A stretch of 64,000 nucleotides of DNA from Blepharisma stoltei ATCC 30299 (Eukaryota; Protista; Ciliophora): the NCBI GenBank assembly GCA_965603825.1, contig CBFDEM010000044.1, positions 248,001 through 312,000 of the forward strand, read 5' to 3'. The notes beneath the pieces were generated by a model that did no database searches, was not told the DNA's origin, and saw only the letters and a program-made list of their open reading frames with translations. A program made the translations under genes and the position numbers. Below, one piece after another: positions 9,983-32,549 of this stretch. Every line of letters starts with the position of its first letter. The stretch's first letter is position 1.

Positions 9983-12949
9983 TTAAATTGGACTTTTATC
10001 ACCAACTGGCTTAAAATATGAAGCTTCTCCAGTTGAGAAAGATTGCCTCAAAGGGCAACGATAAAACATTCTTCTTAAGCTTGTAGGTGTTTCAACTGAA
10101 AAGCTAAGTGTTTGATTTATCAAATTTTTGATTTCAGCAAAACTTGTTTTTGATAGTGGTTTCTCATCAAACTGAATTGATTCCTGCAGTTCCATAAATT
10201 TATGGATTCATTCTCCTAGTAATTTATTTAATTTTTTGACCTCAATCTGTTTTCTTGCAAGCTCTTTTTCACATCCAATTTTTAGCTCAGAGAAAAACAG
10301 TTTCCACCTGTCTCTTTCTTGTTTTTGGGCCAAAATTATTTTTTGTTCAAATTCTTTTAATAATTTTTGGTATGTAATTGATTGATTTTTATTTACTTCA
10401 TTGCTTCTTTTTAGTTCAGTATTATATAGTCTCTGCATTTCTAGACTGGTTTCCAATGCTTTAGTCTTCATTGCCAGATTTGATGGTTCTAAAGAATCAG
10501 TGTCTACATAAGAGCCACAAATAGACAGTTCAGGCGTTTTTTCTCAATGATCAGGAAATACTCTTACACTGCCTCTTGGAGCATACATATTTTTAGATGA
10601 AGGTCTTGGGGTAAAAGGTTTAAGAATGATAGGTTTTGGGACCGCCAATGTATCTGGTGTCTTTGCTGCGCTTGAATCTATTTTTTCAGATAATTTAACA
10701 ATGTGAAGAAATGAGTCATGAAGATAGTCGATCATTTCTTCTAGAGATTTAATTTGTTCTTGTTGGTGCTTGCATAAATTTCTTTTCATTTCATGCTTGG
10801 TGTTAATTAATTCTAATTTTCATTCTAATGAATAAATTGATCTTGCCATGTTGGAGTTTATTATGCTGGCTTCAATAACTTGATTTTTTAGCTGAAAAAT
10901 TGTAAAATCTTTGCTTAATTCAGTATTTTCTTCTACAGCATTTTTGATCTCGTCTGTATAATTGTTAGATGCCAACAATTTTTCTTGATCTATTGAAATA
11001 AACTTAGCTGTCGTTGAAATACTAATGTCTTCAAATGATGCGTCTGCGTCTGAGACTGTATTTAAAGTATTCCTGGCATTAGTCTCTAATGCATCGTTAA
11101 ATTCAATACAAGTGCTTTCCTTCATATTTCTTGCGTTTTCAATAAAGGTTTTATATTTGTCATCCAAATCTTGCAAAGCATGCGTTAGTTTACTAATTTG
11201 AAGTGCTGCCTGCTCATTTTGCTGCTTTAAAAACCTATTTTCTTCTGAATCTTTATTTATCATCAGCATGCTTTTATGATAATGCTCATAATATTCATGA
11301 GCTTTTTGTTCAGCTTTAAGCTGCTTTTCAATAGCTTTTGCCAATTTTTTTTCCAAGTCATTTATTTTTTCAGAATGAAGACTGTTTTCTGTTTTTAACT
11401 TTTTTATTTTCTTTTTATGACTCTCTTTTTCCCTTTCACACTTTTCACAATTAAAAGGAATTTTTTCAATTCCAGGGCTTGGAATAGAATAATCAGATTT
11501 TTTATCTTGTGGCAATGAAAATGATGCTTGCAGAGAGTCCCCTTCATATATTGAAAATGGATTCTTCTTTGATGACTCTTCTGTTGAGGTCCTTAGATCA
11601 TCAAGAGAAACCATGACTTTTAAGTCTGAGCCTGAGTTTGGTCTTTTATGCTTTCCTCTTGGAGTTTCTAAAGGCTTGTAAGTCTTTGAGCGACTTGGTG
11701 GGGATTGGCATAAGCTTGATCTGGTGTCTGTGCAAGATGTAGCTGAATCTCTCTCTGCTCTAAGTGCTTGGATTTCGCTTTTTGCTAAACTTAATTCAAG
11801 CCTTAATTGTTCAATAATAAGATTGATGCTGTCAGGAGAATTTTTGATATTTATAGAAACTTTGTTTTGGATGTTTTTAGCTCTCATAGCAAACCGAAGA
11901 GTGTTTAATGTTTCTTCTTGTGACCTTGGAGAAGGCGAACAAGCCACTATGAGGGTAGTTTTATAGTTCCCTCCTAGTGATTCTTGAAGAAGTCTTGTCA
12001 ATTTTGAGTCTCTATAGGGAATATGATCCGAGTTTGATATGAGTGCATGAATCACATTACCAAGCGCTGACAAGGAAAGGTTAATTTTTTTGGCTTCTTC
12101 GAGCTTATTTCCTGTCACCCCTGACCTATTAACATTTTCACTTCCAGCTAAATCAACTAAATTTAATTTCCCTTTTTTCTCACTGTCATTTGGCAGTTTT
12201 TGGTTAACTTCTGTTATAAAAAGCAGATGGGACCTAGAAGATGTATTATTCAGTCTTGTTGATGCAACTGTTCTCATTTGTTCACCTAATGCTAAAACCT
12301 CAAGCATGTCTTTTTCAGAGGTTATACATACTTCAGTTAGTCCATGTACGTATATTCCTCGTCTTGGGCATTGCTTAATTTTAAGATTTACCTGCTGGGC
12401 TTGTAATAAGTCCCTCAAATTTTCTTTATATATTTCAAGCATTGAGCATTTTAATATATACTCCACTTCTCCAAAATCTGAATTAACCGCTTCAAAAATC
12501 TGAGACGCGGCTCTTGGTATGACACCTCTAAATTCTTCATCAAAAATATCTTTTCCCATCATTGTATGGGTTTTCCCTGACCCTGTTTGGCCATATGCAA
12601 AAATTGTGCCGTTGTATCCACTGAGTACATCCTCTATAGTTGGCCTTCCTAAGAACTCGTAAACCTCGCTCTGAGTTGACTGAGAAGAGAAGACGTGGTC
12701 AAGGCTAAAAGTTTCTGGGTCTTTACCTTCTCCTCCTATAGAAACTATTTGATCGGATACAAAAGTTACAAATTGTTTATTTTCAGATAAATTCTATATA
12801 GAGCTTGCCATTTCAAAATCATTTAATGGTCTGAATCGACCAATGACCTTAATTTTGGTGCTTCGTGCTGCATTTTGACTTGGAGATAGATCTGAGGTCT
12901 TTCTAGGTGTTGCAGGAATTGTCAAATGTTTGACTTTTTTGGTTGACAT
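9983..12949 (-). CDS. Kinesin (N-terminal motor, kinesin-1-like; about 983 aa; GC-AG intron 12794-12808)
   Basis: MSTKK...IKVIGRFRP, GYNGTIFAYGQTGSGKT, SSRSH, LVDLAGSE, HIPYRDSKLTRLLQESLGGN; downstream ORFs 10789, 10471 and 10195 join in frame through TGA. Confidence 0.92.
12794..12808 (-). other. 15-nt GC-AG intron GCAAGCTCTATATAG
   Basis: Removes an in-frame TAG from the kinesin motor domain; same length and position-10 A as the GT-AG introns. Confidence 0.8.
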
Positions 12950-26261: not shown

Positions 26262-26624
26262 TTATTTTCCTTCTACTTCACTCCTCAGTGATGACAAAGT
26301 AGTTAAAACAGTCTGAATAGTAGTATGAGAAACCGCTGCATCAGATGCGGCCTCTTCTAAATGATAGAAAAATACATCAACTTCATGTTTTGTAATCCCC
26401 AAGCCAGCGAAAATTTCAGACAAGGGAAGCCCTGTATACATATTAGAATTCTTTGTGAACAATGATTGCAAGTATTCAGTAAATCCTTGCTTAATTTGCT
26501 CAATATCTCTGCCTCTGAAGCGGTTTTTCACTCTAGGGTCATCTAGGAGTCTTTTGAAGACATCTTCAATTATTTTAGAAAGTCCTTGGCCATTTCCGAG
26601 TCTGTCTAGAACGTCGTCTTCCAT
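26262..26624 (-). CDS. Group I truncated (2/2) hemoglobin-like protein lacking the proximal His
   Basis: LDRLG..., DDPRV..RF...D, YTG..L...AGLGIT..E...F..HL: trHbN pattern, with Phe at the F8 position. Confidence 0.8.
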   Translation of the reverse strand: MEDDVLDRLGNGQGLSKIIEDVFKRLLDDPRVKNRFRGRDIEQIKQGFTEYLQSLFTKNSNMYTGLPLSEIFAGLGITKHEVDVFFYHLEEAASDAAVSHTTIQTVLTTLSSLRSEVEGK

Positions 26625-26631
26625 TTATAAA

Positions 26632-27717
26632 TTATGAGAAATTAGTTACAACAAAATTAGAGCTTGAAATGCTGTGACTTGAACTTTTGGTCAAATTCAC
26701 TGTGCTTTTGGAAGATATTGATTTGGAATTGGAGTAAACTTTGTAGGAGTCTCGTTTTCCGATAAAGAGAGTTCTTACCCTTGATCTGGGGACTGTTCTT
26801 TCATAGCTATTTTGGATTGCGCTGTAGTCAGGAGATGGTAGTGAATATTCAGTGTCAAAAATGCTGTTTCTGGAACTCATTTTGTCAAAAGGTAAAATAC
26901 CTTTACTTAATGACTGTTTTAAAAATTCATGATTTGGGTGATAGTTCCCATCATGAATTTCATGATTAAAAAGCTCTTGCCTTGATATATATTGTTTAAA
27001 ACTCGGTGCTTTAAGCGACTCTGATTTTTTCACAACTGGCTCTTTATCAAGAACACTTTCATGCATCTGATTTAAAGGGATTCCTTTTCTCTCTGACTGT
27101 TTGCTAAAAGATATTTTTGCCATGTGAGACTGGTAATATTTAGCACTTGTTTTTTTCCTTTTACAACTTCTAATTTCAGCTGAATTCATAAAATCGCTTA
27201 AATTCATTGTTTTTTGAAGCTCAGATTTTCTTTCAGCTTTATGTGGATATTTGCATTCTAAATCTTTTTCATCGACACAATCAGGCAAAAAAACTTTTGG
27301 GTCCCTTGGGATGCTTGATCTCTGGGTTTCTCTTAATTGAACATTAGTGGGTGTTCTAGGTCGGACTCAAAAATAGTTTGGGGAATATTTTGTTGAAGGC
27401 GGAGCATCACTGTAATTTGATTTTTGAATTTCTTCACGCTTTTCTCGTGTAACAGATAAAAAGGAAGAGCTAGGGACTTTAGTCTCTTTTTTCATTAATA
27501 AAGATTTGTGAGGCTTTTGGGGAGTATTTACAAGTTTTTCAATTTCTTCAGAATTCAAAATAGATTTTCTGGCTTCCACAGCGCTTTTGATAAATTTTTT
27601 GGTTGGGATTAGGCGTTGTGTAAATTTGATACTAGATCGTCCATGGTGGGAATATCTCGGGACATCATTGATAATGCTTTCGATTTCTTTTATTAGACTT
27701 GACTTATCAGTTGTCAT
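26632..27717 (-). CDS. Hypothetical basic Ser-rich protein (361 aa)
   Basis: Two ORFs joined in frame through the TGA at 27367; APPSTKYSPNYF(W)V motif. Confidence 0.7.
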
Positions 27718-27980
27718 TATTTATTCATTTATTTTTTTAGTTTATATTAAAAAAGGTAAAATAATCGAGAATTAAAACTTGTGCAGGGTAATTAAAAAGA
27801 AATCAATAGCAATCAATAGAGAGGATTATAACACATGATAAAATATTAATATTTAAATAAGTTGAAAACGCTTACTGACTAGTAATTTTATGATATCAGC
27901 CTTGCAGACTATTGTTGCATCAATATCAGATATTTTATTAGACTATATAATTTTTTACATAAAATTTATCAATATATTAT

Positions 27981-29537
27981 TTATTTGCATTCATGAAGCT
28001 TCATGCACTTGAGATGAATAGGCTTTTTGCATTCATGACAACAGTGTCTAGTTTTACTACATTTCTTACTTTGTAGCGTTTGATGCTCCACACAATACCT
28101 GCACCTTGATACTTTATTCATTTTCTCTGCAAGCTGTTCATTTTCTTCTTGGCTGACATCTTTTGTAAGCTGTTCCGCTAGTAATCTTGTAAATTTCTCA
28201 TGACTCATTGCTTCTACTATGCCTTTAGTACTGTAATGCTTATAAATGATGAAAGAATTTGTTACTGCAATTTCAATTAAATAGTGGAAGCATGATTTCC
28301 ATCATTTTACAGACTTTCTATGTGTGCTATACGCTTGTATGAGCTGATCATAATAGTCCACTCCGCCCATCCCAAATGTGTATTTCGATACAATAACAGG
28401 CTTTTCCACATTTTTTTCAGTCCCCTCTTTTGCCGTTCTTTTAACAGAGTTGAATTGGATTCCTTCAATATTGGATAATAGATATATAGGTCTATGGTCA
28501 TATCATGCACAAAATAGCAGGTCCCCTCTCAAGAAAAATTGGTTTCTTGTTTTTTTGCTTATGCTTGCTTTCGGAAGCCCTTTTCTGTTTGGATTCACTG
28601 TTCCTGTTGCTGCAAGGCCAAGATTTGAAAGCGAATTGAATAGTTCGATACTAGAATATCAGCGATCAAAAAACAAATAGTGCTTGTGAAAGCTTCCTTG
28701 CAAGCTTTCAATAAGCCGCAGCACAACTCTCATTGTCGAATGTACATCGTCTTGAGATTTTCCAGAAAAAATATAAAAATTCCACATATAGCCAGACACA
28801 GAATCACATAGAGCGAACACTTTAAAGCCTCATTTTATAGGTTTCGCTGGCATATACTGTATAGCTTGATGCCTTCCTTTGAATTGAATCATTGATTCAT
28901 CAATTGAAATGTATTTTCCAAGGCAATAGTTGGCTTTGCATCTTTCCCGAATCATGCTTAGTATAGGTTCTATTTTGGAAAGCTTGTTGCTTCCGTAGTA
29001 TTGCAATGGAGATAAATGCATCATGCGGCTGATGGCTTGGAATCTTCTACTTGGCATTATCCCAGATATTAATTTATTGTGATAAAGAGGGATCGTTGAC
29101 CAGTAATCCGTTTGCTTTGGTGCTTTAATTAGGCCCATCATAATGGCTATTCCAAGCCAGTTTTCAAGTTCTCGAGGGGTGAGTGGAGTCATGTCTCCCA
29201 TTCTCCTTGATGGGATTGGATTTGCCTCAAATATAGATTTTGCATAGTCGTTTGAATTGTTTGTGATTTCTTCGAGAACTTCTTCATCAAAAAAGATTCT
29301 AAATAAAGATAGAGGAGTAATTTGATCAGGCTGAGGCTGACCTGGTTGAGGATCCATTAAAGGAATGGTATCTTGTCTTTTGAGCTTTGTAAGTTCGGTT
29401 CACTCTTCTGTACTAAATTCATCAGTGCAAGCTGTTGCTTCATCTTCGCTAGAGAAAGAAGCGCCGGAAGAGTAGCTGGATGAGTCTTCAAATTCATTTT
29501 CAAAAATGTCTTCTTCAATATTAAAAGCACTCTGCAT
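27981..29537 (-). CDS. piggyBac-family transposase (DDE_Tnp_1_7) with complete DDD triad and Cys-rich domain; likely domesticated (PiggyMac-like)
   Basis: One 518-aa frame with 5 TGA: acidic N-terminus, PLSLFRIFF, SIDESMIQFKGR..QYMPAKPIK(W)GFK, FFDR(W)YSS, GTVNPNRKG, MGGVDYYDQ, RKSVK(W)WK, C-terminal CRYC...CHEC...HLKC...H. No TIR/TTAA ends found. Confidence 0.93.
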
Positions 29538-30045
29538 CTTGATGTTGTCGAATATCTATTAAATAAACTTGGGGGCTTCAAATTGTTTGCTCGTATGCAT
29601 TTTTATTGCAATATCTTAAGTTTTCTATGTCATTTTTAGAAGTATATTTTAATTCTATCAAACAATTAAATAATTTTGGTTTAAATTTCTTGTAAGTAAA
29701 ATTTGCTTATAATTATAGATTTTATGCTTATTTAGTCTTCATGAAGGATATCAATAGGATCAGGTGCTTTTCTTTAAACTTAAATGCTAATTTTTACTTT
29801 TCAGATGGCTGAGGCTGAATTTTAATCCAGTAATGATTTTAGAATACTAATCTCCATTATAAGTTTTAATCTTTCCAATTTTTCATTTCATCTTTAAAAC
29901 TTGCCACGTGCTCATTCCATATTCGTCTAAATCGCTTATATAATCTACTCTCATTATTCTTAATAAGCTTAATTATAACTCCAATCAAGAATTCCCAACA
30001 CTAGCTGCATCTTCTTTCCAATTTCTGTTCAGCATCTAACAGTAA

Positions 30046-32484
<2,439 letters not shown>

Positions 32485-32549
32485 ATCATCAATTTCTAAA
32501 TATTTTCTTTTTTAAATTGATTTACACTTAATCTATATTTGAAAAATGA

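Follow-up and report, generated by a model that had tools for sequence, protein, structure and literature searches.

A UGA-recoded piggyBac transposase gene in the Blepharisma stoltei macronuclear genome identified as BPgm, the published candidate IES excisase

The window analysed was a 64,000-nucleotide stretch of Blepharisma stoltei ATCC 30299 DNA (contig CBFDEM010000044.1, positions 248,001–312,000 of the forward strand). At 27981–29537 (-), translation with TGA read as Trp yielded a single frame of 518 codons followed by a TAA stop. This frame is preceded by a 5' intergenic segment (29538–30087 (.)), which it shares with a divergently transcribed CDC48/p97 AAA ATPase gene (30088–32484 (+)), and is followed by a 3' intergenic segment (27718–27980 (.)) that extends to where the next gene, a 361-aa ORF, begins. 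The spacers are correspondingly short, with 263 b from the stop to the next gene and ~550 b from the start to CDC48. A gene for a small truncated (bacterial-like) globin (26262–26624 (-)) lies two genes downstream, and further neighbours encode a PB1-ZZ protein, a protein kinase and a CLC channel. The original prediction had described the surroundings as cellular, in agreement with CDC48, the truncated globin, the PB1-ZZ protein, the kinase and the channel.

The 518-codon frame contains five internal stops, all of which are TGA (codons 46, 236, 293, 345 and 412), with no in-frame TAA or TAG and no frameshifts. Under the standard or the bacterial code, the same ORF splits into six pieces. Since an in-frame TAG is found seven codons upstream of the ATG, M1 was assigned as the first possible start. 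The TGA codons were then located in a family alignment comprising 11 other members. Three of them coincide with near-invariant Trp columns, namely codon 46 (29400–29402 (-); Trp in 10/11 homologs), codon 345 (28503–28505 (-); 10/11) and codon 412 within VK-W-W (28302–28304 (-); 11/11). The other two occupy largely aromatic W/Y/F columns, namely codon 236 within KPIK-W-GFK (28830–28832 (-)), whose column holds R in 2/11, and codon 293 within DR-W-Y (28659–28661 (-)). Most long ORFs of the window likewise carry in-frame TGA. Decoding of UGA as Trp is therefore well supported, and the 518-codon ORF does not represent a chance reading. The earlier proposal that the apparent ORF fragments form one 518-aa protein once TGA is read as Trp was confirmed by both the translation and the family alignment.

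A six-frame read-through search of the genome with the Pfam profile DDE_Tnp_1_7 (PF13843; curated cut-off of 22.4) matched the frame at 28251–29318 (-), equivalent to C44:276251–277318, with 272.7 bits over profile positions 1–349 of 349 and four TGA codons inside. The HMMER comparison that had been suggested with the original prediction therefore returned a full-length match. The pieces between TGA codons match the profile colinearly, covering positions 1–153, 155–209, 215–255 and 276–327. Upstream of the domain, residues 1–45 (29403–29537 (-)) form an acidic, Ser-rich N-terminal tail without a Pfam match.

Within the domain, all three catalytic Asp columns of the family are occupied in one frame, which gives a complete predicted DDD triad. 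The first putative catalytic residue, Asp213 in ISIDESM (28899–28901 (-)), lines up with D268 of T. ni piggyBac, as counted along the printed alignment with PDB 6x67, and with LSLDEG of piggyBat (9c0f). The second, Asp291 in FFDRWYSS (28665–28667 (-)), takes the place of the invariant Asp of DN(F/Y/W)(Y/F)(T/N)S, in a column tied to IYMDNYYNS of piggyBat. This residue was positioned via the family alignment; a PDB search with the 56-aa piece ending at D291 returned no piggyBac match, the motif lying at the very end of that piece. The third, Asp394 in GGVDYYDQ (28356–28358 (-)), aligns with KGVDRADQ of piggyBat. D213 and D291 are 78 residues apart, and D291 and D394 are 103 apart, so that the triad has exactly the positions and spacing originally proposed. 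The frame ends with a Cys/His tail, C479-x2-C482...C500-x2-C503-x4-H508-x2-C511-x3-H515, which spans 27993–28103 (-) and reads CxxC-CxxCxxxxH-CxxxH, as anticipated from the Cys/His-rich character first noted for this region. Pfam PF13842 did not match the tail, and its assignment as a C-terminal cysteine-rich domain (CRD) was made by motif and alignment.

The original prediction had cautioned that the gene may not be new, and rightly so, as it is the gene that Singh et al. (PNAS 2023, PMC9942806) described under the name Blepharisma PiggyMac, BPgm (Contig_49.g1063 / BSTOLATCC_MAC17466). In the supporting information of that study, a GC-AG intron of Contig_49.g1050 (BSTOLATCC_MAC17453) is given together with the bases on either side. 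The resulting 21-b exon-intron-exon string has one exact occurrence, at 12791–12811 (-), against 0.00 expected, and counting ORFs from this intron to the 518-codon ORF gave 13 over ~15 kb, which leads to g1063. Furthermore, the ORF is the sole PF13843 match on its own contig, and the other PF13843 matches mirror the arrangement in Table S7 of PMC9942806, with one contig carrying two matches separated by 85 kb, another an adjacent pair, and three more contigs a single match each. The position of the g1050 intron, the ORF count, the sole match on the contig and the Table S7 arrangement together equate the ORF with Contig_49.g1063, BSTOLATCC_MAC17466 and BPgm. The motif given for Blepharisma PiggyBac homologs in the supporting information is also CxxC-CxxCxxxxH-CxxxH (PMC9942806). 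The ORF shares with published BPgm the contig, the gene order, the CRD motif and the standing of sole homolog whose DDD triad lies in a single frame, and no difference was detected at these levels. Judged by locus, gene order, domain, triad and CRD motif, the ORF is identified as the already published BPgm, and is referred to as such hereafter.

A phmmer search with a 189-aa piece against 1.84 billion representatives returned B. stoltei paralogs as the nearest proteins (45% and 43% identity), gave no self or ortholog match, and otherwise listed animal piggyBac-like proteins. A profile built from the six pieces plus three homologs retrieved only metazoan-type piggyBac proteins from a 5.8-billion set. 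The 189-aa piece alone produced no match at E ≤ 1e-10 in a search that covers only proteins of 104–331 aa sharing exact words. The closest matches outside Blepharisma are animal PGBD4-like proteins.

Transcription was assessed with contigs from four public runs of one study (X1–X4; type guessed as RNA), which were placed on 26600–32500. They cover 27992–29611 collinearly, without joints or indels, and thus extend into the 5' intergenic segment as far as 29611, while intergenic positions 27682–27991 and 29612–30151 are empty of contigs. BPgm is transcribed, and the contig pattern is transcript-like. Because these contigs are collinear and free of joints and indels, the coding sequence is intron-less. 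Contig depth, a poor measure of expression, was 36–116 over BPgm in X1 and X3 versus 3–9 in X2 and X4, and ran in the opposite direction over CDC48 (600–680 in X1 and X3 versus 750–1225 in X2 and X4); with that reservation, it suggests a roughly tenfold regulated difference relative to CDC48. Of note, X1 and X3, and not X2 or X4, contain additional contigs that differ at seven single bases of the BPgm coding sequence (28380–28647). Four of the changes are synonymous, and the three that are not (T373N, T368M and S327N) all lie between D2 and D3. The variant contigs probably represent a second allele or a partner strain in mixed mating samples. The published developmental time course mixed two mating types (PMC9942806), to which the variants in X1 and X3 may be tied.

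The flanks and copy number of BPgm were examined in the macronuclear (MAC) assembly of B. stoltei ATCC 30299 (41,464,486 b in 64 contigs). TTAACC and GGTTAA are absent within 27000–31000, and neither intergenic segment contains a terminal inverted repeat (TIR) or TTAA end. Among TTAA-bounded inverted pairs across both flanks, the best has 8/14 matching bases, which is equalled by 83% of shuffles. Inverted repeats around BPgm are AT-rich, show 70–84% matches and are randomly scattered. The reported absence of TIR and TTAA ends was therefore borne out, with nothing above chance in either flank. At the DNA level, BPgm is a single copy, the other matches in the genome being short and 68–80% identical, and at the protein level it shares 28–44% identity with the other homologs in the genome. 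In this MAC assembly, the copy-number and terminal-repeat search outlined with the original prediction accordingly revealed neither near-identical copies nor terminal repeats.

Separately, the segment 27100–27900, which comprises the 5' portion of the 361-aa gene together with the region upstream of it, is partially duplicated on this contig at a distance of ~100 kb (C44:377400–378200; L016). This duplicate is 84% identical with many indels, and the duplicated segment ends ~80 b short of the BPgm stop. An 80% DNA match ~100 kb off proved to correspond to this duplicate of the 361-aa gene, which excludes BPgm.

Elsewhere in the genome, the C5a paralog has a 534-aa open frame in which the triad positions are taken by K, G and I, the C5b paralog is devoid of the D1 segment and carries Glu in the D3 position, and the loci on C9, C23, C57 and C58 are frameshifted. 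BPgm is thus the only paralog in the genome with the triad in one open frame. In a quick phylogenetic tree, BPgm forms a clade with the two C5 paralogs (SH-aLRT of 92), in which its branch length is 0.40 compared with 0.97 and 1.46 for the C5 paralogs. The shortest branch is as expected for the clade member under the tightest constraint. In this tree, built without Paramecium or Tetrahymena sequences, BPgm groups only with the C5 paralogs; a clade of ciliate PiggyBac homologs has been reported (PMC9942806).

A piggyBac-like element of ~1.75 kb is present in the genome as four copies, at C9:324153–325913 (L002), C57:760556–762039 (L006), C58:87356–88780 (L005) and C23:113981–115765 (L004), plus one left-end fragment of ~350 b at C1:681340–681685 (L017), mutually 90–97% identical in DNA. 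In the two full copies, homology starts with CATTCTCTAGGGC, directly preceded by TTAA, and closes with ATTATAGAGTG, directly followed by TTAA, beyond which the flanks are unrelated. Seven of the first nine bases of the termini match as an imperfect inverted repeat. Four left ends are concordant, one of them with TTAG instead of TTAA. The copies carry frameshifts, a common 14-b deletion immediately downstream of D1 and a single ~470-b insertion. All three Asp codons are kept in the C9 copy, distributed over two frames, within the motifs IAIDESM, LYIDNWYNS and RGIDMFDQ. Its apparent frameshift lies between D2 and D3 and produces two overlapping ORFs (L002:2280–2420, about 325.2 kb), and no GT-AG mini-intron was found there to bridge the frames. 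A further relic at C23:644652–645050 (L013), short and nearest to BPgm, covers the D1 region, where it is 68% identical to BPgm in DNA and, over 74 aa, 62% identical in protein. It is full of TAA, TAG and TGA stops and is absent from the eight homologs of Table S7 of PMC9942806.

The C9, C23, C57 and C58 loci correspond to the BPgm-like genes (BPgmLs) on Contig_3, 17, 60 and 61 of PMC9942806, and account for five of the seven BPgmL models. In that study, the homologs were described as having no terminal repeats and as being all under purifying selection, with dS values versus BPgm of 6–108 in Table S7 (PMC9942806). These dS values are saturated. Most of the published BPgm-like genes look like decaying TTAA-flanked piggyBac copies retained in the MAC, and this contrast sharpens the case for BPgm itself being domesticated. 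It is also conceivable, though we would sooner bet against it, that BPgm acts without catalytically dead partners of the Paramecium type, the BPgmLs on Contig_3, 17, 60 and 61 being decaying transposon copies and only the two C5 paralogs being left as possible partners. If true, this would revise the published claims of absent terminal repeats and of purifying selection in all homologs (PMC9942806).

With a probability of roughly 80%, we consider the ORF to be BPgm, a domesticated piggyBac transposase that would serve as an IES excisase during new-MAC development. Drawing on family chemistry and on published Blepharisma data, BPgm would be made in quantity during development of the new macronucleus and would recognise the ends of germline-limited IESs. 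Its RNase-H-like DDD site would then free them by double-strand cuts, after which the flanks would be sealed precisely by host repair, as has been shown for Paramecium PiggyMac. In the published work, BPgm is the sole complete-triad PiggyBac homolog of eight and the primary candidate IES excisase, and its expression rises to a peak at 22–38 h, when new MACs form (PMC9942806). About three quarters of Blepharisma IESs are TA-bound and about one quarter are not, and short IESs show a ~10-bp length periodicity that the authors took to indicate one main excisase (PMC9942856). In addition, intragenic IESs require seamless excision, for which piggyBac enzymes are known among the cut-and-paste transposases of eukaryotes (PMC9942806, PMC9942856). 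Both here and in the literature, an active excisase is inferred from the triad, the published developmental up-regulation and the TA-bound, periodic IESs; a literature search retrieved neither a knockdown nor an in-vitro cleavage study of BPgm.

Two other accounts of the ORF itself were weighed and appear highly improbable. In one, an autonomous piggyBac transposon that can still move would be present in the somatic genome, with the ORF encoding its transposase, as might be suggested by the intact ORF and triad and by the TTAA-flanked piggyBac copies found elsewhere in the genome. This is contradicted by the single copy at the DNA level and the absence of TTAA/TIR ends, the flanks having neither TTAACC/GGTTAA nor a TTAA-bounded inverted repeat above chance. 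The proximity of cellular genes on both sides (263 b and ~550 b) and the mere 28–44% protein identity to other homologs point the same way. The other account, that of a decaying non-functional relic whose frame arises from chance read-through of TGA stops, is hardly more credible, even though the standard or bacterial code does leave six pieces. The full-length Pfam match, the transcript contigs and the location of all five internal stops, each a TGA, on Trp or aromatic family columns contradict it, as do the in-frame TGA codons of most long ORFs in the window and the freedom from TAA/TAG stops and frameshifts over 518 codons. The genuine relics of this genome (L013 and L014) differ in that their stops are a mixture of TAA, TAG and TGA.

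A more serious, if still unlikely, alternative concedes a domesticated piggyBac protein that is not the main excisase. In this scenario, BPgm would excise only some of the IESs, in the manner of Tetrahymena Tpb1/Tpb6, or play another developmental DNA role, and DDE_3, IS1595 and MULE transposases would do the bulk of the work. The same genome indeed encodes such complete-triad, development-induced domesticated transposases, whose involvement cannot be excluded according to the authors (PMC9942806) and which could take over the excisase role or a share of it. The IES fraction without TA boundaries (about a quarter; PMC9942856) and the lack of a published BPgm knockdown in our search also fit this scenario. 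Against it, the ~10-bp periodicity of short IESs favours one main excisase (PMC9942856), the seamless excision that intragenic IESs demand is known for piggyBac enzymes, and BPgm evolves more slowly than the other members of its paralog clade. On balance, BPgm as the candidate IES excisase of new-MAC development is the preferred reading.

The gene and its proposed role have already been published (PMC9942806, PMC9942856), and no new biology is added by the present analysis. What it contributes is an independent sequence-level confirmation of the gene model, which includes the absence of introns, the location of UGA on Trp or aromatic columns, the single copy and the absence of transposon ends. 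The sole possibly new element is the transposon-copy observation on the BPgm-like genes. That these are mostly TTAA-flanked transposon copies bears on whether Blepharisma possesses a Paramecium-like multi-subunit Pgm/PgmL machine.

Among known systems, T. ni piggyBac (6x67/6x68) and Myotis piggyBat (9c0f) resemble BPgm in the Pfam domain, the acidic N-terminus and the C-terminal CRD. Both lie inside TTAA-flanked elements with TIRs, whereas BPgm has neither. The triad spacing of T. ni piggyBac is 78 and 101, the D1–D2 distance of 78 being equal to that of BPgm. Identity to animal piggyBac-family proteins amounts to about 26–46% over the N-terminal half. The CRD of BPgm comprises five Cys and two His, in contrast to the six-Cys variants of Paramecium and Tetrahymena, and the heterotrich CRD layout is grouped not with the Paramecium/Tetrahymena type but with piggyBat and the human domesticated piggyBac proteins PGBD2/PGBD3 (PMC9942806). 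Compared with PGBD2/PGBD3, the BPgm ending CMKLH does not include the penultimate Tyr of the -YH ending.

Pgm of Paramecium tetraurelia is, like BPgm, a MAC-encoded, TIR-less domesticated piggyBac protein with a DDD triad and a CRD. Pgm is about twice the length of BPgm and carries a long C-terminal extension, unlike BPgm, whose 518-aa chain terminates directly after the CRD. Each is the sole triad-complete member among its paralogs and is induced in new-MAC development (for BPgm, PMC9942806), and the IES substrates in both systems are TA-bound with periodic lengths (PMC9942856). The excisase role was shown experimentally for Pgm and is proposed for BPgm, and the PgmL-like partners in Blepharisma, unlike those in Paramecium, mostly look like transposon copies. 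Tpb2 of Tetrahymena thermophila is likewise a domesticated piggyBac protein with a DDD triad that operates in programmed DNA elimination (PMC9942806). Its excision lacks precision and most of its IESs lie between genes, whereas most Blepharisma IESs lie within genes and have to be excised precisely (PMC9942806, PMC9942856).
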